Positions 3,968 to 49,845 of a stretch of DNA of 64,000 nucleotides are shown in pieces. The notes below the pieces were generated by a model. The model did no database searches and was not told where the DNA came from. It worked only from the letters and a program-made list of their open reading frames with translations. A program made the translations under genes and the position numbers. This DNA comes from Fimbriosthenelais zetlandica (lineage: Eukaryota). Within the stretch, counting starts at the first letter, position 1. Each line of letters opens with the position of its first letter. The stretch is taken from contig OZ365115.1 in the NCBI GenBank assembly GCA_977030845.1, positions 310,001 through 374,000 on the forward strand. Reading direction: 5' to 3'.

Positions 3968-5593
3968 ATGATGGAGAATGTGACAGTATTGTTGTGGCGA
4001 GGTGACGTCACCATCTCACCATGGCGAGGTGACGTGTCACCATGGACTGTGACGTCACCGTGTGATAACGTCACGGATGTTAACTGTACGTCTGGGGTGG
4101 GTGTGACGTCATCACATGACGTGACGACGTTAAAGCTGGTCTATCACGGTGAGATCTGGACGCCGCCCGTCATTCAGCGTATCGTCATGTTGGTCATCCT
4201 CATGATCCTCACATTGATCGGTAACATTATAATCATCATCGTCCTCAGCTGTAGTAAGTATAAGAAGTTAAACCGGCGTGTCAACATCTTCATCGTGAAC
4301 CTGGCTATAGGTGACCTGACGGTGTGCTGCTTCACCATGACCACTGAGATCCTGTTTGTGGTGTTTGAGGGGGCCTGGGTGCTGGGCGCTGTAGCCTGTA
4401 AGGTTCTACTGTACATACAGGTGATCACGTTAGCCAGTACCACGTTTATACTGACCGCCATGAGCTTTGACCGTTACCAGGCCATCTGTAAACCTCTCAG
4501 TTTTGGTAACACCATCTCACGGGCTCGTAAGATGATCGCCATCTCGTGGATCCTCGCCTTCATCTTCGCGTGGCCTCAACTTCTCATCTTTAAGCAGAAC
4601 GCGGTGGGCGTATACGTGGACGGCGTGGTGAAGTATAAGTGCCGCAGTAAGGGCTACACCGCCTGGTGGCAGCGTAAACTCTACTTTACGTTCCTCACGG
4701 CCTACATCCTCGTCATACCAGCCGCGCTCATCTGCTTCTGCTATTTTAACGTCGTTAAGGTGGTGTGGCGTCAGGGACGTGACACGACGCGGGACGCGGG
4801 CGTGTCACTGCGACGTACGATACGTGACAACAAGGCCATCCCGCGAGCTAAAGTAAAGACCATCAAGATGACGCTGAGCATCATCTGTACCTTCATCATG
4901 TGCTGGACCCCGTACTTCGTGGTCCACCTCATCCACATCTGGTCTGAGTACACGGCTCAGATCCCCGAGGAGGTGTACGCCTTCGCTGAGACCATCGCCT
5001 TGTTGAACAGCGCCCTCAACCCCATCCTGTACGGCTGCTTTAACATCAAACTTAAACGTGGCTTACTGGAGGTGTTCTGTCCTCACAAAGTCAAGATGAG
5101 GGAGCGGCAGCAGTTCAGAGACATGGCGACAGGCGTCACTGAGTGTATGTCAGTCAATGAGAATAACGCGTGTGTCGACATGGCGAAACACATCAGTGGG
5201 CGGTGTGTGCGAGATGCCAGCAGCTCCAGTCATAGCTGTCACAGCTGCCAGTCACATCACAGCTGCCAGTCACATCACAGCTGCCAGTCACATCCCAGTT
5301 GCCAGTCACATCCCAGTTGCCAGTCACATCCCAGTTGCCAGTCACATCCCAGTTGCCAGTCACACCCCAGTTGCCAGTCACACCCGAGTCACAGTCACAG
5401 CTCTGGTGATAAAGATGGCCGCACGCGGACCTCGTCTAAAGATAATATAATCACAGAGGAGAACGTGAACGGAATCAAACTGAGGGTGAGGTTCACTAAC
5501 GGCGGGAGCAGGTCACCACTGTCACAGTCTATAAACGGTATTAACAGTCCTATAGACGACGAGTCAAAGACACTGATGACCACTAACACATAG
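3968..5593 (+). CDS. Intronless class A GPCR, neuropeptide receptor of the vasopressin/oxytocin-GnRH-CCAP/NPS receptor superfamily (541 aa)
   Basis: Seven hydrophobic segments with canonical motifs: TM1 GN, TM2 NLAIGDL, TM3 C...DRYQAIC, TM4 W...WPQ, TM6 CWTPYF, TM7 NSALNPILY. N-terminal N-glycosylation sequons (NVT, NVT, NCT). TM4 PQ and 'IPRAKVKTIKMT' are typical of this superfamily. GC3-rich codons. Confidence 0.96.
   Translation: MMENVTVLLWRGDVTISPWRGDVSPWTVTSPCDNVTDVNCTSGVGVTSSHDVTTLKLVYHGEIWTPPVIQRIVMLVILMILTLIGNIIIIIVLSCSKYKKLNRRVNIFIVNLAIGDLTVCCFTMTTEILFVVFEGAWVLGAVACKVLLYIQVITLASTTFILTAMSFDRYQAICKPLSFGNTISRARKMIAISWILAFIFAWPQLLIFKQNAVGVYVDGVVKYKCRSKGYTAWWQRKLYFTFLTAYILVIPAALICFCYFNVVKVVWRQGRDTTRDAGVSLRRTIRDNKAIPRAKVKTIKMTLSIICTFIMCWTPYFVVHLIHIWSEYTAQIPEEVYAFAETIALLNSALNPILYGCFNIKLKRGLLEVFCPHKVKMRERQQFRDMATGVTECMSVNENNACVDMAKHISGRCVRDASSSSHSCHSCQSHHSCQSHHSCQSHPSCQSHPSCQSHPSCQSHPSCQSHPSCQSHPSHSHSSGDKDGRTRTSSKDNIITEENVNGIKLRVRFTNGGSRSPLSQSINGINSPIDDESKTLMTTNT
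5243..5386 (+). repeat. Coding 18-bp repeat x8 (SCQSH[H/P]) in the GPCR C-tail
   Basis: agYtgccagtcacaYcMc; 8 x 18 = 144 nt, in frame. Confidence 0.95.
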
Positions 5594-7470: not shown

Positions 7471-10439
7471 CTTGATGGGGTAGGGGAGAATGGAAGTTTT
7501 ATGTTATGTGAAGCTAATGGCATCATAAGATATGACATAAACTGTGTGCTTGTTTTTGTTGACTGTTGTTTGAAGCTATTATAGGTGATTATTTATTATG
7601 AATATTATAAGTGATTATTGAGTAAATATAGGTGATAATTTAAATGATAATTTAAGTGACTATTTATTGATTATATTATATGTGATTATAATGAATCTCA
7701 ATCGATGTGTGTATGGTTTGTTACTACATTAAAATCTAAAAAATTCAACTCGTATTATTTCATTTATACAGAGATGAATTAGTTAGAGATGAATTACAAG
7801 TAGTTAGCTACACGCTACATTCACTAGACAAAAATACTGCAACATTGAGGCACAATCAAAGAGGCATTTTTTCATCTAGGGTCAGCCTGTTTTAACCCTG
7901 GTTTGCCTGTTTTAACCCTGGTTTGCTTGTTTTCTGTGGTCGGTGTTTTTGTGTGGGGAGGAGGAGGTCGTCCAGACTATTAATGGGTTCTGGTTGTAGC
8001 TTTTAGCCGCCGCCCTGGACAATGTTTGCTCCCGTGTCTTCTGTTTGCTCCACTAAGAAAGTGTCTTGTGTTTGCTCCACTCAAAAACCTGTGTCCACCC
8101 TCCCTGTCTCTCACTTCTTGCTCGCTCTTTCTCCCCTCTTTCTCTTCTGTGTCACTTTCTCTCACTCCCACTCTGTCTCTCCCTCTCCTCACTCTCACTC
8201 CTCTTTCTCCCGCTTTCTCTCTCAAAGACACAGGCATAGTATAGTTTCACGGTCTACAGGCAGACAGACAGACAGACAGACAGACAGACTGACTGATGGC
8301 GGCTTGCCCACCATGGCTGACTGTCACGTCGCCGCCATCATGGACAAACAGGCTATAGCACGAACTTATTACCCTCCTATATCACTCACACCCCCAACCT
8401 AACACCCCCAACCTAACATCCCTCACACCCTCAACTCCCACACACCACACACCCAGCCCCCACACACCGAGCCCCCACACCCACGGCCCCCACACCCCAA
8501 CACCCACATACACCTTTTTTCATTATGTAGAGGAAGTGGTAGGATACCCAATTGAACACTCTTCGATCATGGTTCAAATGTACGAAACAAAACGAAAAGA
8601 ACTAAAGTTCAGATGAGATCAATTATCTTTAAGATACAAAAGAAACCATACTATAAGCAACATGATAGTCTCTAACTAAATTGTATATTCAAAATTGTTA
8701 CTTTCTTCAATAATCCCAGAGCAAATTTCTTAAAAATTATCCCACTCACCCATCATACCCCCGACTCCCTCACCCCATCCCCGCCATCATTTCCATTCAC
8801 TAAAATCCTACTGACGAGCCACTGTGAAAGCAGCCACTGTGAAAGCAGCCACTGTGAAAGCAGCCACTGTGAAAGCAGCCACTGTCAACTGTTTAGTAAA
8901 TTTAGCAGGCACGGGAACTCCCCACCTAACATTGCCATAATATCTCAGCATGGTTACAAATTAATGTCTGTGAGAATATGTGCGAATGTGGGGGAATGTG
9001 CCTGCGTGTGTGACTGTGGCACTATGTGACTTTAGTGGGGAATGTGTCGGTATGTGAGAGTCGTTTCATGGTGGGTGTGAGAGTGGATCTGGACCCCCCC
9101 CCCCCACCCCCCCCCCCCCCGCCCCCCATCCCGCTATATCCGCCGGTATTTACTGGGCGGAGTGAGCGTGATTGAGAGAGGAAGACACAGACTTTATATT
9201 CAGATTGTCTGCTACTGGAACCAGCCGCTAAAATCCTGCCCATTACAACCACAATATATACAATATATACAATACACTAGAGGAAGCAAACAATACAATA
9301 TATAGACTATAATAGACAATAAGGGGAGGCGGGTAGAAGTATTAGACGACATACCACAACCCGCCAGCCACAATCACCCTAAACTATTTATGCTGAGCAG
9401 GAAATCGTCCAATATTACATTTACCACTATATTATAGATCACCCTCCACTATACTAGTAAAGCCGGGCATCCACTATCACGATAGACCACTAAGATAGAC
9501 TCACTGATGGAGAAAACACTAAAAATACAGTCAAAATGCATGTTCACACCCGTGATAGACCATGATAGACCATGATAGACCATGATAGACCACTAAGATA
9601 GCAGTTAAGATAGGTTATACGACAGAGAGAACATCAATCAAGTTACTTTAATTCATTCCCGTATAAAACACAAACAGTATTTTCAAACACAAGCATTGTT
9701 AGAGGCAGCAACAATGAGCAGCAGTCCCTTTTGTCCAGTGAGGGTAAGTTCATCTTTCACTATTTTTCTTTCCTAATTTCGCTGTAATTTTCTCACAAAT
9801 GGCACATGTTGTCATCTCACTGTAGGACAACCTTATACGTGGATATTAATGACATCCTAAAACACGCAGCAACAGGAGAATTATATTGGCAATATTCTCA
9901 TACATATAAATGTGTAACAACTTATGACAGAAATAATATAACTTTGATTACGTACTTTCTCCTCGCTCTCTTCTACCTCTCACCTTCTCCTCGCTCTCTT
10001 CTACCTCTCCCCTTCTCCCCGCTCTCTTCTACCTCTCCCCTTCTCCTCGCTCTCTTCTACCTCTCACCTTCTCCCCGCTCTCTTCTACCTCTCACCTTCT
10101 ACCTTCTAGCCCCAAATAAATGAAGTTGAATATTCCGGTTTTGTCATAGATTGTGAGAGTAGAGTATGAGCTGTGTCAGTCCTCCAGGTCGGGCAGGTTA
10201 ATCAGATATATTATAGACAGAGCGGGGGCTAATAAGAACATGAGCTAATACCGACATGGCCTAATACCAACATGAGCTAATACCAACATGAGCTAATACC
10301 AACATGAACTAATACCAACACGTCTACTGACGGTTTAATTATAGAATAAGACCAGTACAGGGGGATTAGGCCCCGGGGAGGCCTGACTAGATCACCTCAT
10401 TTACTTTACATTCACTAAATGAAAGCTGGGTCTAATACG

Positions 10440-10582
10440 GGGCCTCCACTACCACGATAGAACAGTTAATATAGCTTAAAACAGGGCCTCCACTACCACG
10501 ATAAAAGAGCAGTTAATATAGCTTAAAACAGGGCCTCCACTACCACGATAAAAGAGCAGTTAACATAGCTTAAAACAGGGCC
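10440..10582. repeat. About 47-bp tandem repeat x3
   Basis: gggcctccactaccacgataaaagagcagttaatatagcttaaaaca. Confidence 0.85.
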
Positions 10583-11002
10583 ACCACTCTTACAATAGTC
10601 CACTAAATTTTATTTAAATAGCAGTTATGTATTGGCTTATAATTTTCGGGGGCTGGGTGCGGGCTTCTATGTCATATATATATATCCTATCCCCCCCCCC
10701 CCCCCCCAACTGTTGTAAAATGCAGCAGCTGGTCTCTGTCACCTCATCCAGGGCAAGGACATTGTGACAGACATGTTGACAGGGCCTGACGAGGCCCGGT
10801 GAGGCCCAGTGAGGCCCTCTGACCTCAGGTCCTTCCTGTAGCTGTCCCACACACCGAGTGTCCATTCTATACCGGAGATTACCATATGTATGTCTATAAT
10901 AAAACCTACTACACGCTCACCCAAAATGACTGACACACTTTGAAAAAAATCAAATTGGAACATGAACTGACTGTCACAGCAGCCCACTACAGGACCTGCT
11001 AA

Positions 11003-13792: not shown

Positions 13793-14113
13793 TCTCACCA
13801 CAAACAGTAAGAGACATGCCTCTCACCACAAACAGTAAGAGACATGCCTCTCATCACAGACAGTAAGAGACATGCCTCTCACCACAAACAGTAAGAGACA
13901 TGCCTCTCATCACAGACAGTAAGAGACATGCCTCTCACCACAAACAGTAAGAGACATGCCTCTCATCACAGACAGTAAGAGACATGCCTCTCACCACAAA
14001 CAGTAAGAGACATGCCTCTCATCACAGACAGTACGAGACATGCCTCTCATCACAGACAGTACGAGACATGCCTCTCATCACAGACAGTGGGACACATGCC
14101 TCTCATCACAGAC
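13793..14113. repeat. 28-bp minisatellite, about 11 copies
   Basis: ctcaYcacaRacagtaagagacatgcct. Confidence 0.95.
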
Positions 14114-15149
14114 CGTGAGAGACTTTGATATTTATATATTTATATATATTGATATTTATATATATTCGTGACTGAATGTACACTGAGAGAGGGGAGAGAG
14201 GAGAGATTGATGGGCGGGAGGTGTGATATATCTATCAGAGAAAGATGTTTAATGATCACTTAGTAAATGAGAAGTTTTACTCCAAGACAATATGTCAGAA
14301 TCCCCCAACCCCCCGCCCCCTACCCACCTCCCTCCCCCACCTCACCCCGCCCCCTACCCACCTCCCCGCCCCCCGCCCCCACCTCAGCCCGCTGGTTTAT
14401 TTATGATGTTTTGTGATAAGATAACTAGATTAGATGATGGCGGCCTGAAGGCGGATTAACGATAAACCAGGCGGATTATAGACACAGATTTATAGACGGG
14501 TATTATTATATCACCAGATCCGTCCAGAGATAGGGGTATAAGGGGGGGGGGTGGGTACTGGGGGACAAGCGGGTGGGTACTGGGGGAAGGCGGATGGTTT
14601 GGGTGGAGCATTGGGTGCGGGGGGAGTTACAGTAAAATTGGGTCATACATCATCTTTCTCCTATCAAAGTAACAAACAATCAAACAACCAAACATCCTGA
14701 CATCCTGACATCCTGACTCCGTCTCTATACATGGGCTGAGAGTCGAGCTGAGAGTCGACCTGAGAGCTCGTTGTGTCGATGTATAAAATGCTTTCATAGA
14801 AATAAATCTTGAGGGAAAACCAAATCAGGGAAAACCTTTTAACGTAAAGGACGTTTTAAAGTTTTTTTTCCAATTTTCAGGGAATCTGCACATTTGTGCA
14901 AGAGTTTTGTTTAAAAAGTTAAACCAAAACGTTCTTATTTTTTTAGCCAGATTTGACAACAAAAATCCTCTCCCCACTCCATGACTGCTGCCTCCTTATA
15001 GTGAGACCGCGTTTTATCAGTAAAGAGCTTATAACTAAAACATCTCCTCTACTGTGTGAAGTGGCCATAAATGAGTCTGAGCAATGCTCAACAGCAATTA
15101 GTTGGTACAAGCAATAGGCAGTTGGAAAAGGCAATTGGTAAAAGGTGGC

Positions 15150-15318: not shown

Positions 15319-15564
15319 TAATTTCTCCCGTAGAGGACGCTTGTAAACGTCACTCATCGTGAGTTAGAGACAAACATGGAGGAGAAAGTTAGATGTCTAG
15401 ACGACAAATAAAGTAAGAGAATACGTCCATCACATAGACCACCCCCCCCCCCACTCCCCCCCCCACTCCCCCCACCCCCCAATCCCCATCATTCACCATC
15501 TCTCCTGACGCTCGCCATCAAGAAGAGTTTCTGTATCAGAACGAGGCTTGCCTTGTCATGTGAG

Positions 15565-15588
15565 AATCACGTGATTAAGACCGGAAGT
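15565..15588. promoter_or_regulatory. E-box palindrome plus ETS motif abutting the 29-bp array
   Basis: AATCACGTGATT (15565-15576) and ACCGGAAGT (15580-15588). Confidence 0.3.
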
Positions 15589-15589
15589 A

Positions 15590-16980
15590 GATGGCTGAGT
15601 GACCACTAGAGGGCTCTAGTGGGCTGAGTGACCACTAGATGGCTCTAGTGGGCTGAGTGACCACTAGAGGGCTCTAGTGGGCTGAGTGACCACTAGATGG
15701 CTCTAGTGGGCTGAGTGTCCACTAGATGGCTCTAGTGGGCTGAGTGACCACTAGATGGCTCTAGTGGGCTGAGTGACCACTAGATGGCTCTAGTGGGCTG
15801 AGTGACCACTAGATGGCTCTAGTGGGCTGAGTGACCACTAGATGGCTCTAGTGGGCTGAGTGACCACTAGATGGCTCTAGTGGGCTGAGTGACCACTAGA
15901 TGGCTCTAGTGGGCTGAGTGACCACTAGATGGCTCTAGTGGGCTGAGTGACCACTAGATGGCTCTAGTGGGCTGAGTGACCACTAGATGGCTCTAGTGGG
16001 CTGAGTGACCACTAGATGGCTCTAGTGGGCTGAGTGTCCACTAGAGGGCTCTAGTGGGCTGAGTGTCCACTAGAGGGCTCTAGTGGGCTGAGTGACCACT
16101 AGATGGCTCTAGTGGGCTGAGTGTCCACTAGAGGGCTCTAGTGGGCTGAGTGACCACTAGATGGCTCTAGTGGGCTGAGTGTCCACTAGAGGGCTCTAGT
16201 GGGCTGAGTGTCCACTAGATGGCTCTAGTGGGCTGAGTGACCACTAGATGGCTCTAGTGGGCTGAGTGACCACTAGATGGCTCTAGTGGGCTGAGTGACC
16301 ACTAGATGGCTCTAGTGGGCTGAGTGACCACTAGATGGCTCTAGTGGGCTGAGTGACCACTAGATGGCTCTAGTGGGCTGAGTGACCACTAGATGGCTCT
16401 AGTGGGCTGAGTGACCACTAGATGGCTCTAGTGGGCTGAGTGTCCACTAGAGGGCTCTAGTGGGCTGAGTGTCCACTAGAGGGCTCTAGTGGGCTGAGTG
16501 ACCACTAGATGGCTCTAGTGGGCTGAGTGTCCACTAGAGGGCTCTAGTGGGCTGAGTGACCACTAGATGGCTCTAGTGGGCTGAGTGTCCACTAGAGGGC
16601 TCTAGTGGGCTGAGTGTCCACTAGATGGCTCTAGTGGGCTGAGTGTCCACTAGATGGCTCTAGTGGGCTGAGTGTCCACTAGATGGCTCTAGTGGGCTGA
16701 GTGTCCACTAGGTGGCTCTAGTGGGCTGAGTGACCACTAGGTGGCTCTAGTGGGCTGAGTGTCCACTAGAGGGCTCTAGTGGGCTGAGTGTCCACTAGAT
16801 GGCTCTAGTGGGCTGAGTGTCCACTAGATGGCTCTAGTGGGCTGAGTGACCACTAGATGGCTCTAGTGGGCTGAGTGTCCACTAGATGGCTCTAGTGGGC
16901 TGAGTGTCCACTAGATGGCTCTAGTGGGCTGAGTGTCCACTAGATGGCTCTAGTGGGCTGAGTGTCCACTAGAGGGCTCT
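15590..16980. repeat. 29-bp palindromic minisatellite x48, each unit with a CTCF-type core CCACTAGRKGGC
   Basis: CCACTAG at 15603 and 16966 are 1363 bp = 47 x 29 apart (no net indels); unit (a/g)(t/g)ggctctagtgggctgagtg(a/t)ccactag. Confidence 0.97.
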
Positions 16981-17028
16981 GAGTGTTGATGTTTGAGGCG
17001 GGTGGGGGCGTAACTGCTATCTTACAGT

Positions 17029-17347
17029 GGTCTATCGTGATAGTGGAGGCCCTGTTTAAGCTACCTTAGTGGTCTATCCTGATAGTGGAGGCCCTGTTTA
17101 AGCTACCTTAGTAGTCTATCCTGATAGTGGAGGCCCTGTTTAAGCTACCTTACTGGTTTATCGTGATAGTGGAGGCCCTGTTTAAGCTACCTTACTGGTC
17201 TATCGTGATAGTGGAGGCCTTGTTTAAGCTACCTTACTGGTCTATCGTGATAGTGGAGGCCTTGTTTAAGCTACCTTACTGGTCTATCCTGATAGTGGAG
17301 GCCCTGTTTAAGCTACCTTACTGGTTTATCGTGATAGTGGAGGCTAC
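17029..17347. repeat. 42-bp tandem repeat, about 7.5 copies
   Basis: ggtctatcgtgatagtggaggccctgtttaagctaccttact. Confidence 0.93.
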
Positions 17348-19308
17348 TTTTTTATTGTTAAGTGGTCTATCAATGGACAGTGGAGTCTGATATTAGAGTC
17401 ATATAAAAGCCTTTGCGTCACCAGTCTCACGTCGCCTACTTTGTTACTGTTAGTGAAGGGGGAGCAGCTCTCTGGTTACTTTGTTACTGTGGAGTGGCTC
17501 TTCACCACTCTACGTTACCTCGTGTGGCCTGTCAACCATCTATATGTTACCACTACGTTACCACTATGTTAGCCCCGTCAACATTCGTATAAAGAATGGT
17601 GAGTAACTCATCCTCTCCTCTCTGTTCTAGCTTTTCTCTCGTAATCTGTTCCTTAACTAGTGCACTAGTCTCATTGTATCTCATTGTATTAAAGCTATCT
17701 AGGTCATATTGGGAAACCAGCAGGTCGTGAAATATGTACCTTTAGAAGTGTTGTCAATAAAATAACCAAACACCAACAGCTGCTGCTCTATAATAAACGA
17801 GGCTCTTATAATCCGGCTCTTATGTCGTTGTATAACTGGAGGGAGCCCGCACGGCCGGTTTTAAACAAAAAAAAATCATAGGGAAATTCCTGCTATGTCT
17901 CCTACGAGGGATAGCTGGCTCCCACTGGGACAAGATCTGTCGCAGCGCTGAGCCAGCGAGAGGTGTCCACAGCTGCTCCAGGCCTGCTCGCACTGGAGTT
18001 TACTCTCACTTCAGGACCAGACTGAGTGAGGCTCGCTGCAACATGCGCAGTGTTTTTTTTTGTGTAAAAGTTTTCTTTTTCCTGTGACAAATGCAGTTAT
18101 ACTACAGGGAGATTGTCTCTTGACAAACAAATATTTCTCAGGAGGTCTCGAACATGAAACAGCCTGGGGAGTAATTGGGGAGTGAGACAGAGCCTGGCAC
18201 AGCCTGGGGACAGAGGGAGGCATGACAGGCATGGAGGTAGTCAACTGTGGCGCGGGGAATTGACAGCCCCAGGTGACGAACAGATTCTCATGAAATAACT
18301 TCACTGTTCACACACGGTAACACTACTTCAAAGCTTATTCATATAATGTGTAACAGATTGAGAATATAGAGAGGGAGAAGAGAGAGGGTGAGAAGAGTGA
18401 GAGGGAGGAAGAGAGAGGGAGAGAAGAGTGACAGGGAGGAAGAGAGAAGGGAGAGGGAGAAATAGGAGAAGGAAGAATGGGGAAGGAGACAAGAGAGAGA
18501 GGGAGATATATGGAAGGAGAAGGGAGAAGGGAGAGCGAGAAGAGAGGGAGTGAGTGAGAGAGAGGATTGGGAGGTTCTGAGAGCCGGGTGATTACGGGAT
18601 CTGTGGAGACTTCTCTCCCGTCATTGTTCGTTTGGATTTATTAGAATTATCACGTGAAAGTCGCACAGACAAAAGACGTGTAGTCGATGAAGAAAGTATG
18701 AAATATGTACAGAACTGTCAACTAAAACATGAGGCAGCAATCAGAGAGTGACAGTCTGACAGCTAGCTGTCAGCCAGCTGTCATATAGAGTAATCTACAG
18801 ACAATACCTTCACCACTTACATTAAATCACAGCGCATAGAAACATAAAGAGCAATCACAGCACACAGAGACATGAGGAGCAATCACAGCACATGAAGGCG
18901 GGCTCTATACACCAACATAGAGACATGACGCCGGGAAACGGCCCAGCTCTATACACCATCAAGTCGTCAGCCCTTACAGCCATTACAGCTCTTACAGCCA
19001 TTACCGCCTCATCAAACCCTCATCAAGTCTACAGCTCTATAAAGTCTATAAAGCATCGTGATCGGTAAGATGTAATAGAGGTAACAATAGTGGGAGTTTT
19101 ATAGAGCTTTGTCAGCCTCACATTGTTGTAAGACGTAATGACTCAGCTGACACCTCTCTTACCGTCAAGTGTACACCGATACTCAATACTTCTACATCAT
19201 GACTCAACTTATCCACGGACCATTCCATGCCCGGAGTGTAACCGAGCCTTTAGTGAGACTCATTCAGATTGGGCTGTGTTTAGGCTGTAGGGAGGAATAG
19301 TGTAGGAC

Positions 19309-22800: not shown

Positions 22801-22884
22801 TGACGTCATGACCTTGTGATGACGTATGACGACCGTCCTCCATGTGGCGCCATCTTGTGTCGTCCAGTAGCAGCTCATCACGTG
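22801..22884 (-). promoter_or_regulatory. CRE / YY1-like / E-box cluster, possible TSS region
   Basis: TGACGTCA (22801), CGCCATCTT (22848; AAGATGGCG on -), CACGTG (22879). Confidence 0.3.
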
Positions 22885-24858: not shown

Positions 24859-25640
24859 TGATAGCGTTACACAGTCGTTGATGTGCGTGTAACTAAGCCC
24901 GTGGTTCTAACATTGATTAACGACTCGTGACATCTGACGATCACCAATCAACAAGACATTAATCACCGAGAAGAAACATCGAGAAGAAACTAGAAGTAAT
25001 ATATCACTACAGTCCGTTAACTTCACTACAGTCCGTTAACTTCACTACAGTCCGTTAACTTCACTACAGTCCGTTAACTTCACTACAGTCCGTTACTTTC
25101 TCTGGTCAGATACGGAGATACTCAATGTACCATTATTTCTGTCACTGTTTGGCAGGGATCGCATGAAGCTAGAACTGACCTCCAGGTTCCATCCGTGGCA
25201 TTATTCCCCTAAAAATGAATGGGACGGGAACCCGCGGGCTGCGACCTTGGGTTTCTCATCCCATTCACTCTCAGGGTCTAAAACCAGTACGACGTCTCAG
25301 TCGGTTCTATGTATACTCCATCCAGACACATCGATTACATGAAGACAGTGTAAGGTGAAACAATGAGAGGTTGATAATGATAGAGATTAATGTGTGTGTG
25401 GTTTTATACCAGCCTACATATTAACTTCGTGTGATACGCCGTGATTCATCACAGGTGAGAGGCCAGCCATGTGATACGATCATCATCATCATTATATCAT
25501 CATTACATCATCATTATATCATCATTTAAGTCGGCCTCTCAATCATCAAGTCTCTCATCTTAACCAGCCACGTGTGATAGAATTACAAATATAACAGTCT
25601 CACCAGCACCCCAGGCGACACACGGCGGAATTAGCCATTG

Positions 25641-26050
25641 TCTGTGATGAGAGGCATGTAAAAGGCCAGCCATGTCTCCCACTGTCTGTGATGAGAGGCA
25701 TGTACAAGGCCAGCCATGTCTCCCACTGTCTGTGATGAGAGGCATGTAAAAGGCCAGCCATGTCTGTGGTGAGAGGCATGTAAAAGGCCAGCCATGTCTC
25801 CCACTGTCTGTGATGAGAGGCATGTACAGGGCCAGCCATGTCTCCCACTGTCTGTGATGAGAGGCATGTACAAGGCCAGCCATGTCTGTGGTGAGAGGCA
25901 TGTAAAAGGCCAGCCATGTCTCCCACTGTTTGTGGTAAGAGACATGTAAAAGGCCAGCCATGTCTGTGGTGAGAGGCATGTTAAGGGTCAGCCATGTATG
26001 TGGTGAGAGGCATGTTAAGGGTCAGCCATGTCTGTGGTGAGAGGCATGTT
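25641..26050. repeat. Composite 44/34-bp tandem repeat; inverted partial copy at about 33229-33316
   Basis: tctgtgRtgagaggcatgtaMaaggccagccatg(tctcccactg). Confidence 0.92.
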
Positions 26051-29028
26051 GAGGAACCATTTGCTGGTTGAGACCATGGCGTGTTTCCCCCTCGTGTTTT
26101 GACCATGGCGGATACTGGTGTGTTCAACTTCAAACAAACAGAATCCGTAAAGAAAGTGTGAACGAGTAAATGCCATGTCAGACAGAGTGAGAGGAGAGAG
26201 AGATCCGGCGGTTAGAGAGACCGACACATGGTGAGATCAATGTATTCGAGATGAGTGAGAGGGGTGATGGATGAGTGATGGGGGTGGGAGAGGGGGGTGG
26301 GGGGGATGGCGGGGGTGGGGATAGGGGGGAGCTTAAACATAGAGCAACGTGTATTGCTAATAATCAGGAAACTCGAAGTTTTGTTAAACATTGGACATGA
26401 GTTTGGAGGGTGTGGGGTGGTATGGGTTTTGATTTGGGCGCGTATGTGTGTGGGGGGTGTGCGTGTGTGTGTGCGTGTGTGTGGGTGGGGGGGGGGGGAG
26501 TGTGTAGGGTGGATGTGTAGCATGTGGGGTGATGGATGTATAGGGACTATGACAGGGTTAAATATACAGCTGTAATAAGGCGGTATGAGTTCTCACTGAC
26601 AGCTCCACTCACCCACCATTAATTCCTCCCGTGCACACAGGAGCCCAGTAACCAACCAGAAAACTATCTCTATTATTACTTCATATAACCCTACTGCCAT
26701 CAGAGTTACAGAGCGGCTAATCAAAGACACTCACGCTCCTACAAACCGAAACTCTTATACTCTATATGTACAGAACCCTAAGAGAATATTAAACAAAACA
26801 CTTAAGAGATGAATTAGTTCGAGGGTGCAGAAGGAACCCTAACATAAGCAATATATTAGTGTCAAGCAAACTAAACTGAATATATTCTAAATTGCTTTTA
26901 CCTTCACAGTCCCATAGGAAGGAAATCTTGTCGCCAGTTCATATTTGTTAAGACCTTTCACACTCCACCTTCTCTACAGTAGCCTTCCTACAGTATAAGT
27001 CACTGTAATTCACTCTGTACAGGCCTCTACTAATGCCTCTCTAACTCCCTCAGCTATTCTACTATAAGCTCAAACATCAAAATATACTTTTTGTGATATT
27101 TTAAAACTAATGTTAATATAAGATGAATGTGAAATGTAGTGAAAAACAAGACGAACATACAGCAGGTCGCCGACTGAAAAAAACACGACCAGCACAGAGC
27201 AGAGCGCCTGGAGAGAGCTGCAGTATGTCACTACTTCACAATGTTCACAATGTTCACTTTAAAAACTTCACTCTTGTATGTATTTACGTTGTCAGCTGCT
27301 GTAGGGACGCAGGCTGGAGGCGGCTCTCAGCCACCTCTCTCATATACTCACTCTCCTGGGTCCCTTTAAAATATCATCTTAAAACTTATAACGTAAAAGA
27401 TTGGACAACACTACAGGATAAATTTAAACTGTCTAAGATCTATGCCAGCTTGGCGATGCTCGAGATATTGGTGCTTCCATTATGGGGTGTTTCCACTGCC
27501 TTGCGAGTTGCGATCTTGTTGCGACTGGCATTTGAGGCTGGTAAAGTGGTGAAGACCTTTGTTTGAATCCCTGTGAAGGCCTCTGATCATATATATCATC
27601 TATATCATCTATATCAGATTTATCTCACATTCTGTGAAGAGCGCCGCCCGCGGCTGATTCCTGTACTACTGATGGCCTTCACAGACAAGTTCAACATGAA
27701 TGGACAAAGTTGACATGAGGAGCCTGTGGGTGGGTGGACCGTATACTACCCCACCCTTCACATGTAGTATACCCGCAATGTGTAAATTATGAGAAGCACG
27801 TTAAAAGATGGCCTCAATAATCAGCCATCTACCATCACATGGCTACTGCTCCACCCTGCCCTCGCCTCCCCCCCCCCGCCCCCATATCTACCATCACATG
27901 GCTACTGCTTCACCCTCGCCTAGCCTCCCCCACCCGCCCCCCATCACCGCGCTGACCAGCAGAGCCCCCTAGTGGCGTGATTAGGAGGTGTTATTGATGG
28001 TCAAGGTGAGGCTGATAGCCGCCATGATGGACGGATGCTGGACGGACGCTGGTCAAACGCCAATTACGGTAATCACTTAGTGGCAATCAGGGTAAACTGC
28101 TTAAACCTAGAGCCCCGCGTCTAATACAATCTACTGGTTAAACCTACATAGTTGGCTCAAATCACAAAATGTTATACAATCCGTGGCCGGGGGTGTGGGG
28201 GGTATAATGGTTACAATCAGCGGTAGAGCTGACCAGCCTGTCCTCCACCTGATCAATGACTGGTCCATGGCGGCACGGCAGAAAGCAGGATAATAACAAA
28301 CTGGGTTAAGTTGGGTTTGTGTGGAGGGGAGCAGGGCGGGCGTGAGGGGAGCAGGGCGGGCGTGAGGGGGGGGGGGGGAGCAGGGCAGGCGTGAGGGGGG
28401 GGGGGGGAGCAGGGCGGGCGTGAGGGGGGTATTTGGGTCAGAATTAGAGGCTTATTGGGTCAGTGTACTGCTACACATATAACAAGATTATAAGGCAGGG
28501 ATTTAGGGATTAGATGGTCAGTCTAAACGTATACATGGAGTTTAATGAGCCCCTGTAAGAGATGTGTCTGTCATTCTGGTCATGTCCAGTCCGCCCTCGT
28601 CACAGACTTTCACACTGAGATTTAATGGGGTTTTTGAGGAGCGGCGGCTAATGAAGACACGTTTTACTGTAGACGGCTGTGATCACACAGAATACAACAT
28701 AAAACATGGAGTAAAACATGGAGTAAAACATGGAGTAAAACATGCTGCAGTGAAACATGGACTAAACATGGTACAGGGATTGTAGAGGAAGTGGCGGTAA
28801 TTATAGAGAGAGAAGCCAGGCGAGTAATGGTGTGACATGCACAGCTGGGGTGTGGCTGTGGCAGCGTGTGGCTGTGGCAGGGGTGTACGTATGGCGGCTA
28901 CATCCTTTATAAAACGTAAAGTTAGACTGGGAGGCTTGACTATATCAACTGCCACTGTGTCCACTGTTTATGTCTGCCTTATGGTGATTTTTTATCATCA
29001 TCTAATGAGACAACCAGACACGGTCTAC

Positions 29029-32941: not shown

Positions 32942-33475
32942 AGAGGAAGAGACAGCGGGGGAGTAAGAGAGATGAGATGAGATGAGATGGCCAGGTAATC
33001 TAATAAATGGCATTACTGTGTCCATTCCCTCACACCCGCTCTCTTTCCCCTTCACGTTCTCTCTCTCTCTCTCTCTCTCTCCCTCCATCTCTCTCACTTT
33101 CTTCATTAGCTTTCTTTCAGACCTGGATCTATTTCAGATCTACTTCTCTCAGAGAGGCTCATACAGACATACCCACGCCCTGAACTTCTCATAAATAATT
33201 ATTATAATTACTAGGGCTTGTGTGTTGGAGACATGGCTGGCCTCTCATCACAGACATGGCTGTCCTGTTACATGCCTCTAACCACAGACATGGCTGGCCT
33301 TTTACATGCCTCTCATAGTAGACGAGCCAGCAGGGGGTCAGGATGGATTGGGGGGAATGTAGAACTTTATTCCAAACTTCTAACAAAACAGTAAAACGGA
33401 GCTCTCCAGTAATTCATGTCACGGCTGGCCATGCATCATAGCCAGACATTATTGTAGCAGTGAGAGACAGAGAGG

Positions 33476-34181: not shown

Positions 34182-34195
34182 CCACCAGATGGCGC
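34182..34195 (+). promoter_or_regulatory. Single CTCF-type motif
   Basis: CCACCAGATGGCGC. Others: 27964-27975 (-, CCACTAGGGGGC), 37743-37754 (-, CCACTAGATGTC), 47193-47205 (+, CCACCAGATGGCG), 63759-63772 (+, CCGCCAGGTGGCGG). Confidence 0.45.
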
Positions 34196-34590: not shown

Positions 34591-36484
34591 TAACACGTTC
34601 TGACAGCGGTCACCAATGTTCACTTTGTCATTCATACGCGACACTTGCAATATGGCTGGAAACTTTCTCCTGTCATTGTAGTTGGGGTAGGTGGGCGGCG
34701 TGTGTGGGGGGGGGGGGGGGGGGGTTTGGTGGAGGTGTAGGGGGGGGGGGGGGGTGCGGGGAATTGATGCCTCATACCGGCATCCAGCCTCAGGGAATAT
34801 AAGGCCGTCTACATCTGGTCAACTGACAATCTAACCCCAGCCACGTGTGGATCCTTGATCCTCCACTTGTAGGGTCTTATTAGAACTGCTGGGGTGGGGT
34901 GGGTGTTACAGGTCTAGAGTGGGTCTATGGTATGGTCTATGATAGGGTCTATGGTATATGGTCGGGTCTATGGTCGGGTCTATGGTATGGTATGGTCTAT
35001 GGTCTGGTCTATGGTCGGGTCTATGGTCTATGGTCGGGTCTATGGTCTATGGTCTGGTCTATGGTCTGGTCTATGATAGGGTCTATGGTCGGGTCTATGG
35101 TCGGGTCTATGGTTGGCTGTGGGCAGGTTTGGGTGTAGGATATTAGTATGTACTAGTGTAGATGAAGTATTCAGCTATTGACGCAGTGAGACAGTAGTCA
35201 GTCTAGCCGAGAGGTCAGTCAACCTACAATAAGAAGCTTTACCCCCCCCCCCCCCACCTCCACCTCCCCCTCACCCCCCCACCACACCCCCACCCCCCCC
35301 CCCCGCCACCCCTCACCTCCCCACCCCCTCCCTCACCACCCCCCACCCCCCCCCCCCCCCACCCAGAGACAGGTGAACACCTGGCACGCCTTCCCCGGGT
35401 GATGGATGGCTTTACTTCAAGGCGACCAGAAAACAAAAATACAAAAACAGAAAAACAGAAATACCTCCACCGTCTACAGAGGGACCGAGTCTGGCCAACC
35501 ACCACTACAGCCATTAATCTAAATGATCACAAAGGATCTTATTAACTACCTTAACGTCCAACCTCACGTAAACTCAACGCAATGCTACAGAAAACAGTGA
35601 GCTTAAACAGGAATTCTATTTCCTCAAATGTGCCCGAAACATTTACAGTGAGTTACACAGCCCTTCACTGGAAGCCTTCACTGGAAGCCTTCACTGGAAG
35701 CCTTCATCCACATGGCTGACTGACTGACCATTTCACCTAAAGCGCCTTTCATGGCTTTAATCTAAACCACCATTGTTTACTGTAAACCACCATTGTTTAC
35801 TGTAAACCACCATTGTTTACTGTAAACCACCATTGTTTACTTTAAACCACCGTTGTTTACTTTTCTCCAAAGTTATAATTATGAATTCAAATATAAACAT
35901 AATATATACAGTAAACATTAAAACATTTAATGATGAGCCTACCTGGTGGAGCCGACCCTGACAGCCTGCTGACGACCTGGTGCTGACCTATGATGACCTT
36001 TAGATGACCTTGTTACGTCATGATGACCTTTAGATGACCTTGTTACGTCATGATCACCTCGTGCCTTGTCACCTCAGCTGCTGTCACCGCCATCAGTCAT
36101 GAGTAGACTGCGATGTAAAAATAATCACATTAATTCTTATATGATTTATATATAAGTGAGAGAATTTTTATAGGGTCATAGTTATGTTAATATTAACAGA
36201 TTATGTGGCCTACATCAGCCTACATCAGCCTACAGCAGCCTACATCATCTTAAACCACCCTGGATAACACTCACTCCACAACTTTAATTTTGAGCCCGAA
36301 ATAAAAGCTAGGCCCTAAGCTAGGTTCTCCTACACTAATCCTATACTACATGTACTTTTAATGGGACTAATTATTGATTATATTCCAGTGGAACAAGAAT
36401 GAAAACGATTAAGCTATTTTTCTGGAGGTATTATAGGGTGGCGGGAGTAGCCTATCATGTAGCCCCCCCTCCCCCTCACACCCC

Positions 36485-36750
36485 CCTCCCCCCCTCCACC
36501 CACTACGCTCCTTCCACCCCGCCCCCCCCCCTCCCCCCACCCTCCACCCACTACGCTCCTTCCACCCCGCCCCCTCTCCCCCCCCTCCCCCCACCCTCCA
36601 CCCACTACGCTCCTTCCACCCCGCCCCCTCTCCCCCCCCTCCCCCCACCCTCCACCCACTACGCTCCTTCCACCCCGCCCCCTCTCCCCCCCCTCCCCCC
36701 ACCCTCCACCCACTACGCTCCTTCCACCCCGCCCCCTCTCCGCCCCCCCC
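36485..36750. repeat. About 51-bp C-rich tandem repeat, about 5 copies
   Basis: ccctccacccactacgctccttccaccccgccccc... Confidence 0.88.
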
Positions 36751-36884
36751 ACTCCCCCACCCAATACACCACTTGTCACTGCCCGCTGCCCAACCTGCTA
36801 CCCCCTCACACCCCCCCCCCTCCCCCTCACCCCCCCCCCCTCACCCTCACCCCCCCCCCCCCCCCACCCCCGCCCGTTCCCTAC

Positions 36885-46163: not shown

Positions 46164-49100
46164 GGTTTAACGTCACTTTTGAACATTTTTTCAGTTATAT
46201 CATGACGGTGCCTACTTGTGACAGTGAGCCCAATGCTCTTTTATAGTGCTGCCTCACTGAGGTATCATGTCGCAGGCACATGACATGATATCTCACCCAG
46301 TCACATTATACTGACACCGGGTTGACCAGTCCTAGTACTGTCCTCTTTTTGCTGAATGCCAAGCGAGGGAGCCACTAGTTACAATGTATAAGACACCACG
46401 TATTAACACATTATAATACAAAGGTTTTTTTGTTGTTTTTTTAAATGTATTTGTTATATGTCTATTCATACAGGTTACGGTGCTGATGTGCCTCCCGCAG
46501 AACATTTTCTTTGAAAACAAACAAAATGATGCTACATGACATTGAAATAAAACATTGTATTACAATATGATCAAACATGACATAAATAAGATGAGGTGGA
46601 GAAAACGCTCAATAAAAACAGCTGAGTAAGCAGTAAATTACAGCAAATCTTACAACAAGAGAAGCCCAAACCAAGCGACAACCACAATCAGTCTATCTAT
46701 GAATATATATCCACCACACCCAATAATATTCATAGATAAACAAGATTATTAAAACAATAATTAAAATATGATGGTGCAAAAAATATTTAGAGAAACTTCA
46801 AGGCTAGTGGGTTACATATCCTAGTAGTTCAATGTAGATTACATTTTAAGTAAGTTTGTAGTAGGTCTATGTATATGGTTGTAGTAGGCCTATGTCATGT
46901 ATAATACTTTATTAATATTTATCTCACCTGTTATCAGTGACTTTCTGAGCGCGCCCTAGTGACGGATCAATCCACTCTAACCACACGGTGTGAGGTGAGA
47001 GAACACGTGACCTCAGCCCGATAGGTGGCGTGAGGGGGCCCACGGTAGGCGCTACAAGATGATATATCATTATTAATTAACATTAAATCATTAAACAAGT
47101 AACGAAATGTTTCTCTTCCATCTACCCTAACATGGCCTTATACACGCCTCTCACCACATACAGTCATACACCAGTCCTAGTTCTCTAACATCCCACCAGA
47201 TGGCGTGTATGTGCTGTAGGAAGGTGCAGCTAGTAGTTCACTAGTTTACCATGAGAGGGCGCCACCGTACTGAGACTACATGGAGGGGACTCGTAGAGGT
47301 AGGTGGCTTCAATAGGCCAATCTTTCATATAGAGCTTTATCTTCACAATTAAAACAATCTTTATACGAGTATGTCCTGCCCCTTTAAAGAAACATGGTTC
47401 ATTCATCTTTTCTCTGCCTATTTCTTAACTTATACATCTATAATAATGTCTTTCCACTACATGTAGTATTGTTAAATGTGTTAAGCCCTACCCCTGGCTT
47501 CACCCTTTAACATAGTCGTTACATTTAAAGTTACCAGTACTCAGATTGAACATTATGCCGGGCCCACACAGAGGCGATTTTCCCAAGCGATGCAGCGCGA
47601 TAGTATATTTCTTTAACTGTTCTTTACACAGTTGTTTACACCTAGGTAAGGCTAACCACTGACAAAATTACAAGCATTGGGTGTGACTAGAATCCTACTA
47701 TCGCTCTGAATCGCTTGAGCAAATCGCCTGTGTGTGGGCCCGGCTTTATAGAGAGTAGAGTGAATACATTACCGTCCTCCTCCCGCGTGTAGATGAGGTC
47801 GTACACTACCGGGCCCTTCCCGAAGTTGTTGAAAGCCCTCAGACTGATGACATACTGTGTCGAGGGCTCTACAAGGTAAAACACAGGCCATGAGTCCCCC
47901 ACACACAGACAGACACACAGACAGAGATCAAATATAGCTTAACCTTCTACAGCCAAAGTAAAGTGGTGCATGGTGCCAAGCAATAGTGGTGGTGATGGTG
48001 GTGGTAGTGGTGGTGGTGCAGCCTTAAAAATCTCCAAAAAAATATCATCAAATTTCACCAGCCAATGCAACTTGTGTAGGTCAAAATGGGGCAGAAAAAT
48101 TCTAAAGCCACTGCATCCAAAAATGTTTAAAAAAATAGTGTCATTGGCGAGAAGACACTGAAGTAGCTTAGTACTCACTAAGATGTCTAATGGCAAAAGT
48201 CCGGGTGACAGCTGACAGATACTGCCACTTTGTTCTCACCAAACTCCCTACATCCAAAAGAGAAACGAGTACATGAAAAACTCCCCCACTGTATTCACAC
48301 AGTACATCAAAACGCCCCCACTGTATCACTGTATCACTGTATCACTGTATCACTGTATCACTGTATCACTGTATTGATGGGGAAACAGGACGAGATCTCA
48401 GGACAAAGTTGGCTGGTGGAGGTATGTCAGGTACAGACTGTATGCCAGGCCTTCCTCTCAAATTAAACACGTTAAACACGTTAAACCCTCAGCCCTGGTC
48501 TCTATTAAGGTTCATCAAGGCTGGGATATGAACCATCAAGGCTGGGATATGAACCATCAGGGCTGGGATATGAACCATCAGGGCTGGAATGTGGGTATTT
48601 AGGCTCATTATTTGGTCAGCCAGACTGGGCGGAGGCTGGGCGAGGTTTAGGGAGGCTAGGAGAGGTTAGTGGGGGCTGAGAGGCTTTAGGAGGCTGGGAG
48701 AGGCTTCAGGAGGCTGGGAGAGGCTTCAGGAGGCTGGGAGAGGCTTTAGGAGGCTGGGAGAGGCTTTAGGATGCTGGGAGAGGCTTCAGGAGGCTGGGAG
48801 AGACTTCAGGAGGCTGGGGGAGGCTTTAGGAGGTTGATGGAAGCTGGCAGAGAGTCTGTATATGACATACGAGGGCTTGTCGGGACTGTTGATTAGTTTC
48901 TCATTGTTACTTTATTCTGGTCTGATTGCTAGTTGTCTGCGGTGTTTGTAGGATGTAACTATAATGTAGAAATATAGCACATACTTACCTGGTAATGTCA
49001 ATGATTATACTCATCTAACCCATGTCAGGTCAATAATTATACTCATCTAAACCATGTCAGGTCAATGATTATACTCATCTAACCCATTATACCTCATACA

Positions 49101-49845
49101 GACACGGGGCCTGGCGTATTATACATCTAACTATGGTCAGACAGATTCAATATGGGGAGAAGGGGAGGTGAGAGAGAAGCTGATGTACACGTGAATTAGA
49201 GGCGTCTAGGGTTTCATTGGTTGAAGGTGAGTGAAGGCTTCCCATCATACAACACCAGGACGTGTAACCATGGAGAGGCGCGGGTGCTGCCACCTGGTGG
49301 TTTAACCTGACACCAACCCTCACATCACTCACACCGCCGCAGACTTGATTGGAAAATGTCAGACGCTAACAAAAGTATTGTGAACTGGTGGCATGTAGGT
49401 TGCCTCCCCCTAACACCGCATCTCACGACCTCCCCCCGACCTCCCCACCTCCCCCCGACCTCCCCCGATCACCCCCGATCACCCTCCCACACCTACATTC
49501 CTACTACATTCATCTCTTTATAATTCTCTCTCCTCAACTATAGAATCTACACTACTGTATGTGGCTTTAAGTGGTACTATAATGATCTCATCCACCCACA
49601 GATCAAAATATATCACCCACAGATCAACCCACCCCAAACATCCTCAAATAATCTCAAATAGTCAGAGAAAAATCCACTGAACCTCGAAGAAAAGATGAAA
49701 GTAGAATACTGTACTTCCCCATGCTGTAACACTGAGTAAAGTGAGGGTAAACTATGAGTAGAATTTACTGAATGTAGAAACATTAGAACAGCAAAAGGTC
49801 AGCACCAGGTAGAGAGAGGGGAGAGAGAAATGAACGGAGAGAGGC

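Follow-up and report, generated by a model that had tools for sequence, protein, structure and literature searches.

The locus analysed here raises the question of whether a tandem array that repeats a CTCF-type word in every unit and in a single orientation is a selected chromatin boundary or what minisatellite growth leaves behind. It lies in a 64,000-bp stretch of Fimbriosthenelais zetlandica DNA (contig OZ365115.1 of assembly GCA_977030845.1, positions 310,001 to 374,000 of the forward strand), which was analysed in full and is called the window below; all coordinates are positions within it. A first-pass annotation had put the array forward as a candidate satellite-encoded insulator separating a GPCR gene from downstream loci. 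Our analysis indicates that the 48-unit array is most likely an expected by-product in a minisatellite-rich, CTCF-word-rich genome. The array and its CTCF-type words are placed as follows:

15592 to 16983, + strand: minisatellite of 48 units of 29 bp, majority unit GGGCTGAGTGACCACTAGATGGCTCTAGT, indel-free and CpG-free.
15603 to 16977, + strand: 48 matches to the CTCF core CCASYAGRKGGC (word search), in one orientation, one per unit, every 29 bp.

TRF delimits the array at 15593-16985, with a period of 29, 48.0 copies, 97% matches and 0% indels. The heptamer CCACTAG occurs 48 times across 15603-16966 and all 47 of the 47 intervals measure 29 bp, which confirms the indel-free 29-bp periodicity over 48 motifs that had been described from the letters. 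Each unit is laid out as 8 bp (CCACTAGA), 4 bp (TGGC), 8 bp (TCTAGTGG) and 9 bp (GCTGAGTGA), and the inverted half-site reported for each unit is also present, as CCACTAGA-TGGC-TCTAGTGG within a unit and as TCTAGTGG-9 nt-CCACTAGA between units. Three positions of the unit vary, namely A/T one base 5' of the core, A/G at the core R and T/G at the core K, and six internal unit types occur, with counts of 24, 10, 9 or 10, 2, 1 and 1. Unit 1 begins with T, and the last unit is shortened and ends GGCTCTG; the statement that every unit carries GGCTCTA is therefore right for the 47 of 48 units that end CTA and wrong for the last one. Consisting of head-to-tail units within the range of 10-100 bp, at one locus and with high identity, the array is a minisatellite or VNTR, and its 29-bp unit is far from the kilobase-scale unit of DXZ4-type repeats. 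A 29-mer search at up to two mismatches returned 47 full units against 0 expected in the 64-kb window, with no further copy of the unit at other loci in the window, and no copies were found in JGI metagenome contigs.

How well the units match a CTCF site was assessed with words and with a matrix. The core CCASYAGRKGGC is found on the + strand in 48 of 48 units, against 0.25 chance matches for the whole window, and 100 dinucleotide shuffles of the window gave two matches at most. The matrix was a version of the 19-bp JASPAR MA0139.1 whose consensus accords with the IUPAC word in print and whose counts are to be taken as approximate; on it the array units score 17.9-19.9 of a maximum of 27.4 bits, with an exact p per unit of 1.1e-7 to 5e-7. 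In the extended 14-bp form of the published consensus, CCASYAGRKGGCRS, as quoted in PMC6746451, GGC is followed by R and then S. None of the 48 units matches this 14-bp form, and all carry T at the R position, which is the sole penalty in the units and costs 3.8 bits (-3.8 on this version of the matrix); the caveat of the first-pass annotation that GGCTC lowers the score was thus well placed. Compared with a canonical CTCF site, the units possess the 12-bp core and a significant matrix score and depart from the 14-bp consensus. A CTCF-type motif does occur in each unit, as had been claimed, and judged by word and matrix each unit is a good though imperfect CTCF-type site.

Single CTCF-type words were also located in the window:

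27964 to 27975, - strand: single CTCF-type core, with the 3' flank GGCTCT as in the array.
34182 to 34193, + strand: single CTCF-type site agreeing with the full 14-bp consensus (word and matrix search).
47193 to 47204, + strand: single CTCF-type core (word search).
49289 to 49300, - strand: single CTCF-type site agreeing with the full 14-bp consensus (word and matrix search; the 14-mer is given at 49287).

All four fall outside tandem arrays, and as core sites outside the 29-bp array they compare with 0.25 expected (~16-fold, Poisson P = 1.3e-4). The 14-bp consensus CCASYAGRKGGCRS is found in the window only at the single sites 34182 (+) and 49287 (-). In the matrix search, 10 sites reached p<=1e-5, where 150 column-permuted matrices gave 1.1 +/- 1.5; at p<=1e-6 there were three sites, and the column-permuted matrices gave 0.11. 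The site at 27964 (-), to which attention had been drawn for its array-like GGCTCT flank, is present, and its homology to an array unit was ruled out, as its flanks are unrelated to the unit. Further single-copy CTCF-type sites lie at 22834/22845, 37739, 38000, 47246 and 63756; the single-copy sites are ~9- to 16-fold over chance in the window, and the 3' flank GGCGCC is common to several of them. Since the word is enriched as single-copy sites, the genome of this animal seems to use the CTCF-type word. Bilaterians have conserved fingers 3-7 of CTCF together with the 15-bp site that belongs to them (PMC7021899), and the enrichment in the window fits this conservation.

The variants within the array had been taken to sit at degenerate positions of the consensus and to use allowed bases. 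Two of the three variants sit at the core R and K positions and use allowed bases; the argument for constraint built on the variants is not significant. Among the 87 possible single substitutions, 44 are no costlier than the worst one seen, and three random substitutions are tolerated as well as the observed ones with P = 0.12. That at least two of three random changes raise the score has P = 0.011, in a test that is post hoc. G stands at the K position in both edge units of the array, so the edges do not fix the polarity and the direction of this variant is uncertain. Three variants cannot show constraint. A quasi-palindrome templated mutation behind the variants was considered and rejected as a general explanation, as it fits the T/G site only and, with G in both edge units, the polarity is probably the reverse.

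The order of the unit types records how the array grew, and two copies of a higher-order block can be recognized in it:

15824 to 16229, + strand: units 9-22, the earlier of two copies of a higher-order block of 14 units and 406 bp (unit-type order).
16230 to 16635, + strand: units 23-36, the other copy of this block (unit-type order).

The unit-type order of units 9-22 is exactly that of units 23-36, and 0 of 2000 shuffles yield so long a block; by this 14-unit duplication the array shows the higher-order structure by which growth through slippage or unequal exchange is recognized. Five units folded as single-stranded DNA reach -38.1 kcal/mol (z = -6.5), and the palindrome of the unit is able to pair within one unit or between units. 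Its 8-bp arm is the second longest among the 58 arrays with periods of 20-45, for which the median is 4. The block duplication and the hairpin propensity are the traces left when a hairpin-prone repeat undergoes slippage and unequal exchange. A transposon, tRNA or SINE origin of the array was rejected, as no tRNA or Rfam match was obtained and the unit is unlike the other array units of the window. We propose that the array is a young minisatellite, amplified locally in a genome that would be making minisatellites at an extraordinary rate, and that the one CTCF-type site of its unit was either captured from an earlier single site or arose by chance. The 8-bp palindrome would let single strands fold into hairpins, and replication slippage together with unequal exchange may then have carried the unit to 48 copies, a gain to which one recent duplication of the 14-unit block contributed. 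On this proposal, the 48 same-orientation CTCF words would be a by-product of the amplification rather than its reason. The words appear good enough that the CTCF of the animal may well bind some units; a spacing of 29 bp is below the CTCF footprint, and we infer that at most one fully engaged molecule would be accommodated per two or three units.

The local background places the array among many others. Tandem arrays make up 33% of the window, with 149 non-redundant arrays, 132 of which have a period of at least 10; 90 of these 132 are indel-free, as are all five of the five arrays of at least 500 bp. Other arrays have as few variable positions as the 29-bp array or fewer, and several shorter ones have one or none. 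Because indel-free arrays with few variants are the local norm, these features give no sign of constraint; the array is indel-free, as had been stressed, and it is ordinary in being so. The expected number of arrays per window holding the core word is 0.016 by pure chance and 0.37 by capture at the density of the single sites, the latter figure assuming that arrays arise at random places and capture sites already present. The same rates applied to the 685 windows of this genome predict ~10 to 250 CTCF-word arrays. As ~8% of arrays attain ten copies, one long example among those predicted is to be expected.

Most array units in the window, of 10-75 bp, are unrelated to each other. One repeat family with units of 42/47 bp and the core TATCGTGATAGTGGAGGCCCTGTTT forms oppositely oriented arrays, separated by 6.5-7.8 kb, that flank the region of the CTCF-word array:

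17028 to about 17344-17365, + strand: 7.5 copies of a 42-bp unit unrelated to the 29-bp unit, 44 bp downstream of the array.
9446 to 9498 and 10432 to 10588, - strand: inverted relatives of the 42-bp array.

This family could be a foldback-like element or merely a dispersed repeat. The arrays at 13793-14123, 25635-26049 and 33240-33313 (periods of 28, 34/44 and 34 bp) have the core TCATCACAGACAG or its reverse complement in common, in differing orientations, so some minisatellite units belong to dispersed families. Many long C-/G-rich tracts are also present, including 14323-14392, 15439-15480, 35242-35364 and 36464-36875, often beside minisatellites; such tracts are prone to form i-motifs or G-quadruplexes, and one of them lies ~110 bp upstream of the 29-bp array. 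N gaps are present elsewhere in the window.

The genes around the array and the sequence at its left edge were then considered:

3968 to 5593, + strand: single-exon rhodopsin-family GPCR, neuropeptide S / CCAP-receptor-like (Pfam and protein comparison).
15567 to 15588, + strand: left flank carrying the E-box palindrome TCACGTGA and the ETS-type word CCGGAAGT; a partial proto-unit, TAGATGGCT, comes next.

The 3' end of the GPCR gene is 10 kb upstream of the array, and the 3' end of an FN3-domain gene (- strand) is ~24 kb from it. The two genes are convergent, tail to tail, and the array sits within ~35 kb between their 3' ends without detectable coding sequence. When 18 ORFs of the window were compared with Pfam, the GPCR and two FN3-like ORFs were the only matches, with no further family that would indicate a hidden gene beside the array, and neither an Rfam RNA family nor a tRNA was found in the array interval. 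The intronless GPCR belongs to the neuropeptide S / CCAP / GnRH-receptor-like group. The nearest proteins in the database share 75% and 68% identity with it, the protein of the window itself being absent from that database, and its best named relatives are from annelids (Ridgeia 58%, Owenia 53%). At a related GPCR locus of another organism (L001), whose protein is 73% identical over 64% of the query, tandem arrays occupy 2.7% of 21 kb. The CTCF core word is absent there within 10 kb on either side of the GPCR, at a locus that may be a paralogue or too distant. In the left flank of the array, TCACGTGA and CCGGAAGT are 14 bp apart and 4-25 bp from the array, each occurring one to two times in 64 kb. 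The flank has no CpG island (CpG o/e 0.14-0.34), and the 29-bp unit is without CpG in a genome that is itself CpG-depleted (o/e 0.46).

We think it probable that the array arose neutrally, as a by-product of minisatellites forming rampantly where CTCF-type words are common in the genome, with incidental CTCF binding possible. As far as its letters allow a judgement, the array is probably a real and plausible CTCF-binding substrate that came about as a by-product. Against plain neutrality stand the very good per-unit match (p ~2e-7 by matrix) and the non-random occurrence of the word, which would make binding in vivo a live possibility; a dense same-orientation array, once bound, could have an effect whether it was selected or not. 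A selected, dense, same-orientation CTCF platform, insulating the GPCR from the downstream loci or forming a boundary between them, would account for the perfect 12-bp core in 48 of 48 units in one orientation, for the per-unit matrix p of 1e-7 to 5e-7 in a window enriched for the word, and for variants that keep to allowed bases. It would also suit a CpG-free unit in the CpG-depleted genome, since sites without CpG are immune to CpG methylation, which favours constitutive availability. In mammals, insulation is indeed obtained with tandem sites in one orientation and with synthetic arrays (PMC7087399, PMC7200164), and in a squid the borders of domains are enriched for CTCF motifs (PMC10658181). 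We nevertheless regard this selected role as unlikely. The base rate predicts CTCF-word arrays as by-products, the growth pattern looks neutral, and all units carry T where the sites with the 14-bp consensus have R, at -3.8 bits by matrix. The spacing of 29 bp is shorter than both the 34-bp two-core motif and the ~70-bp footprint (PMC10234305, PMC6746451), the neighbouring genes converge tail to tail, the one related locus compared shows no counterpart, and orientation-dependent CTCF function is unproven outside vertebrates (PMC13317027). Beyond the motif itself, an insulator or selected-element role of the array is not supported by the sequence, and the step from a motif array to a directional insulator is unproven in spiralians.

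The array might alternatively serve a role apart from CTCF, either as a repeat, promoter-proximal or transcribed, under the control of the E-box and ETS words or through a series of 20-bp palindromes (CCACTAGA-4-TCTAGTGG) that a dimeric factor would bind. The rare TCACGTGA and CCGGAAGT words only 4-25 bp away and the strong palindrome with its hairpins agree with such a role, which we hold to be improbable nonetheless, as the flank lacks a CpG island, no downstream ORF matches a family and no Rfam match was obtained; to our knowledge, no factor that binds the palindrome CCACTAGA-4-TCTAGTGG can be named. Near-identical short units are hard to assemble and the window has N gaps elsewhere, so that the array could be real with a length or internal order that is partly an assembly artefact, in which case the number 48 and the 14-unit block would mean less. 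The structured mix of six unit types and the clean unique flanks are typical of real long-read arrays, nothing positive points to an artefact, and we consider it very unlikely. The most far-reaching proposal, for which we hold out little expectation, is that in this spiralian local minisatellite amplification is a regular maker of dense, same-orientation, CpG-free and hence methylation-proof CTCF platforms, and that the 48-site array is one of these, bound and working as a directional boundary; it would then be a satellite-encoded insulator outside vertebrates.

If the CTCF of the animal binds the array, the locus would provide a natural 48-site substrate for testing canonical CTCF specificity in spiralians and would address whether motif orientation matters in this group; clusters of CTCF sites would then have minisatellite growth as a source besides transposons. 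At present, dense arrays of transcription-factor words are what one would expect as by-products where one-third of a genome is minisatellite and the CTCF word is enriched, and arrays of this sort should be read as function only with occupancy data in hand.

Transposable elements, such as the rodent SINE B2, multiply CTCF sites without prior selection, and some of the copies are later co-opted. SINE B2 disperses its sites by transposition, whereas the array is local, head to tail and confined to one locus. CTCF-dependent loop extrusion is established in mammals. Natural tandem CTCF sites and the STITCH synthetic arrays resemble the array in setting several same-orientation sites in a row, and such rows strengthen insulation in mammals (PMC7087399, PMC7200164). 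For spiralians, only an enrichment of CTCF motifs at borders or loop anchors in cephalopods has been reported (PMC10658181, PMC13652810), and in echinoderms the motif enrichment comes without an orientation rule (PMC13317027). Our literature search on minisatellite-rich annelid genomes returned nothing useful.

Among mammalian repeats, the DXZ4, ICCE and FIRRE macrosatellites and the 1q23.3 tRNA VNTR share with the array one CTCF site per unit in one orientation, and they have been proposed or shown to anchor chromatin structure (PMC3491370, PMC6125249, PMC4041453). DXZ4-type units measure 3-7 kb and give each site room for a full CTCF footprint, in contrast to the 29 bp of the array unit; their binding was demonstrated by ChIP and different species have kept their motif as the remaining sequence diverged, whereas binding to the array is putative. 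Closer in scale are the 5-HTTLPR and Stin2 repeats of SLC6A4 (units of 16-23 bp, PMC2848977) and the HRNR repeat (PMC10234305), in which, as in the array, the count of units determines how many potential CTCF sites there are. In these human short-unit VNTRs a unit offers far fewer motif matches, or weaker ones, than in the array, and they are vertebrate loci with expression associations. The Helitron-derived minisatellites of C. elegans, described as "mechanical insulators", offer another case of a minisatellite as a proposed chromatin barrier (bioRxiv 10.64898/2026.08.08.743475). Their action depends on curvature with a 10-bp period and involves no protein motif, whereas the agent proposed for the array is a zinc-finger protein and the 29-bp period of the array corresponds to 2.76 helical turns, out of phase and unlike the 10-bp periodicity in C. 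elegans. CTCF sites multiplied by tandem repeats, VNTRs or transposons were thus already known, and the addition made by the present array is an example from a spiralian.
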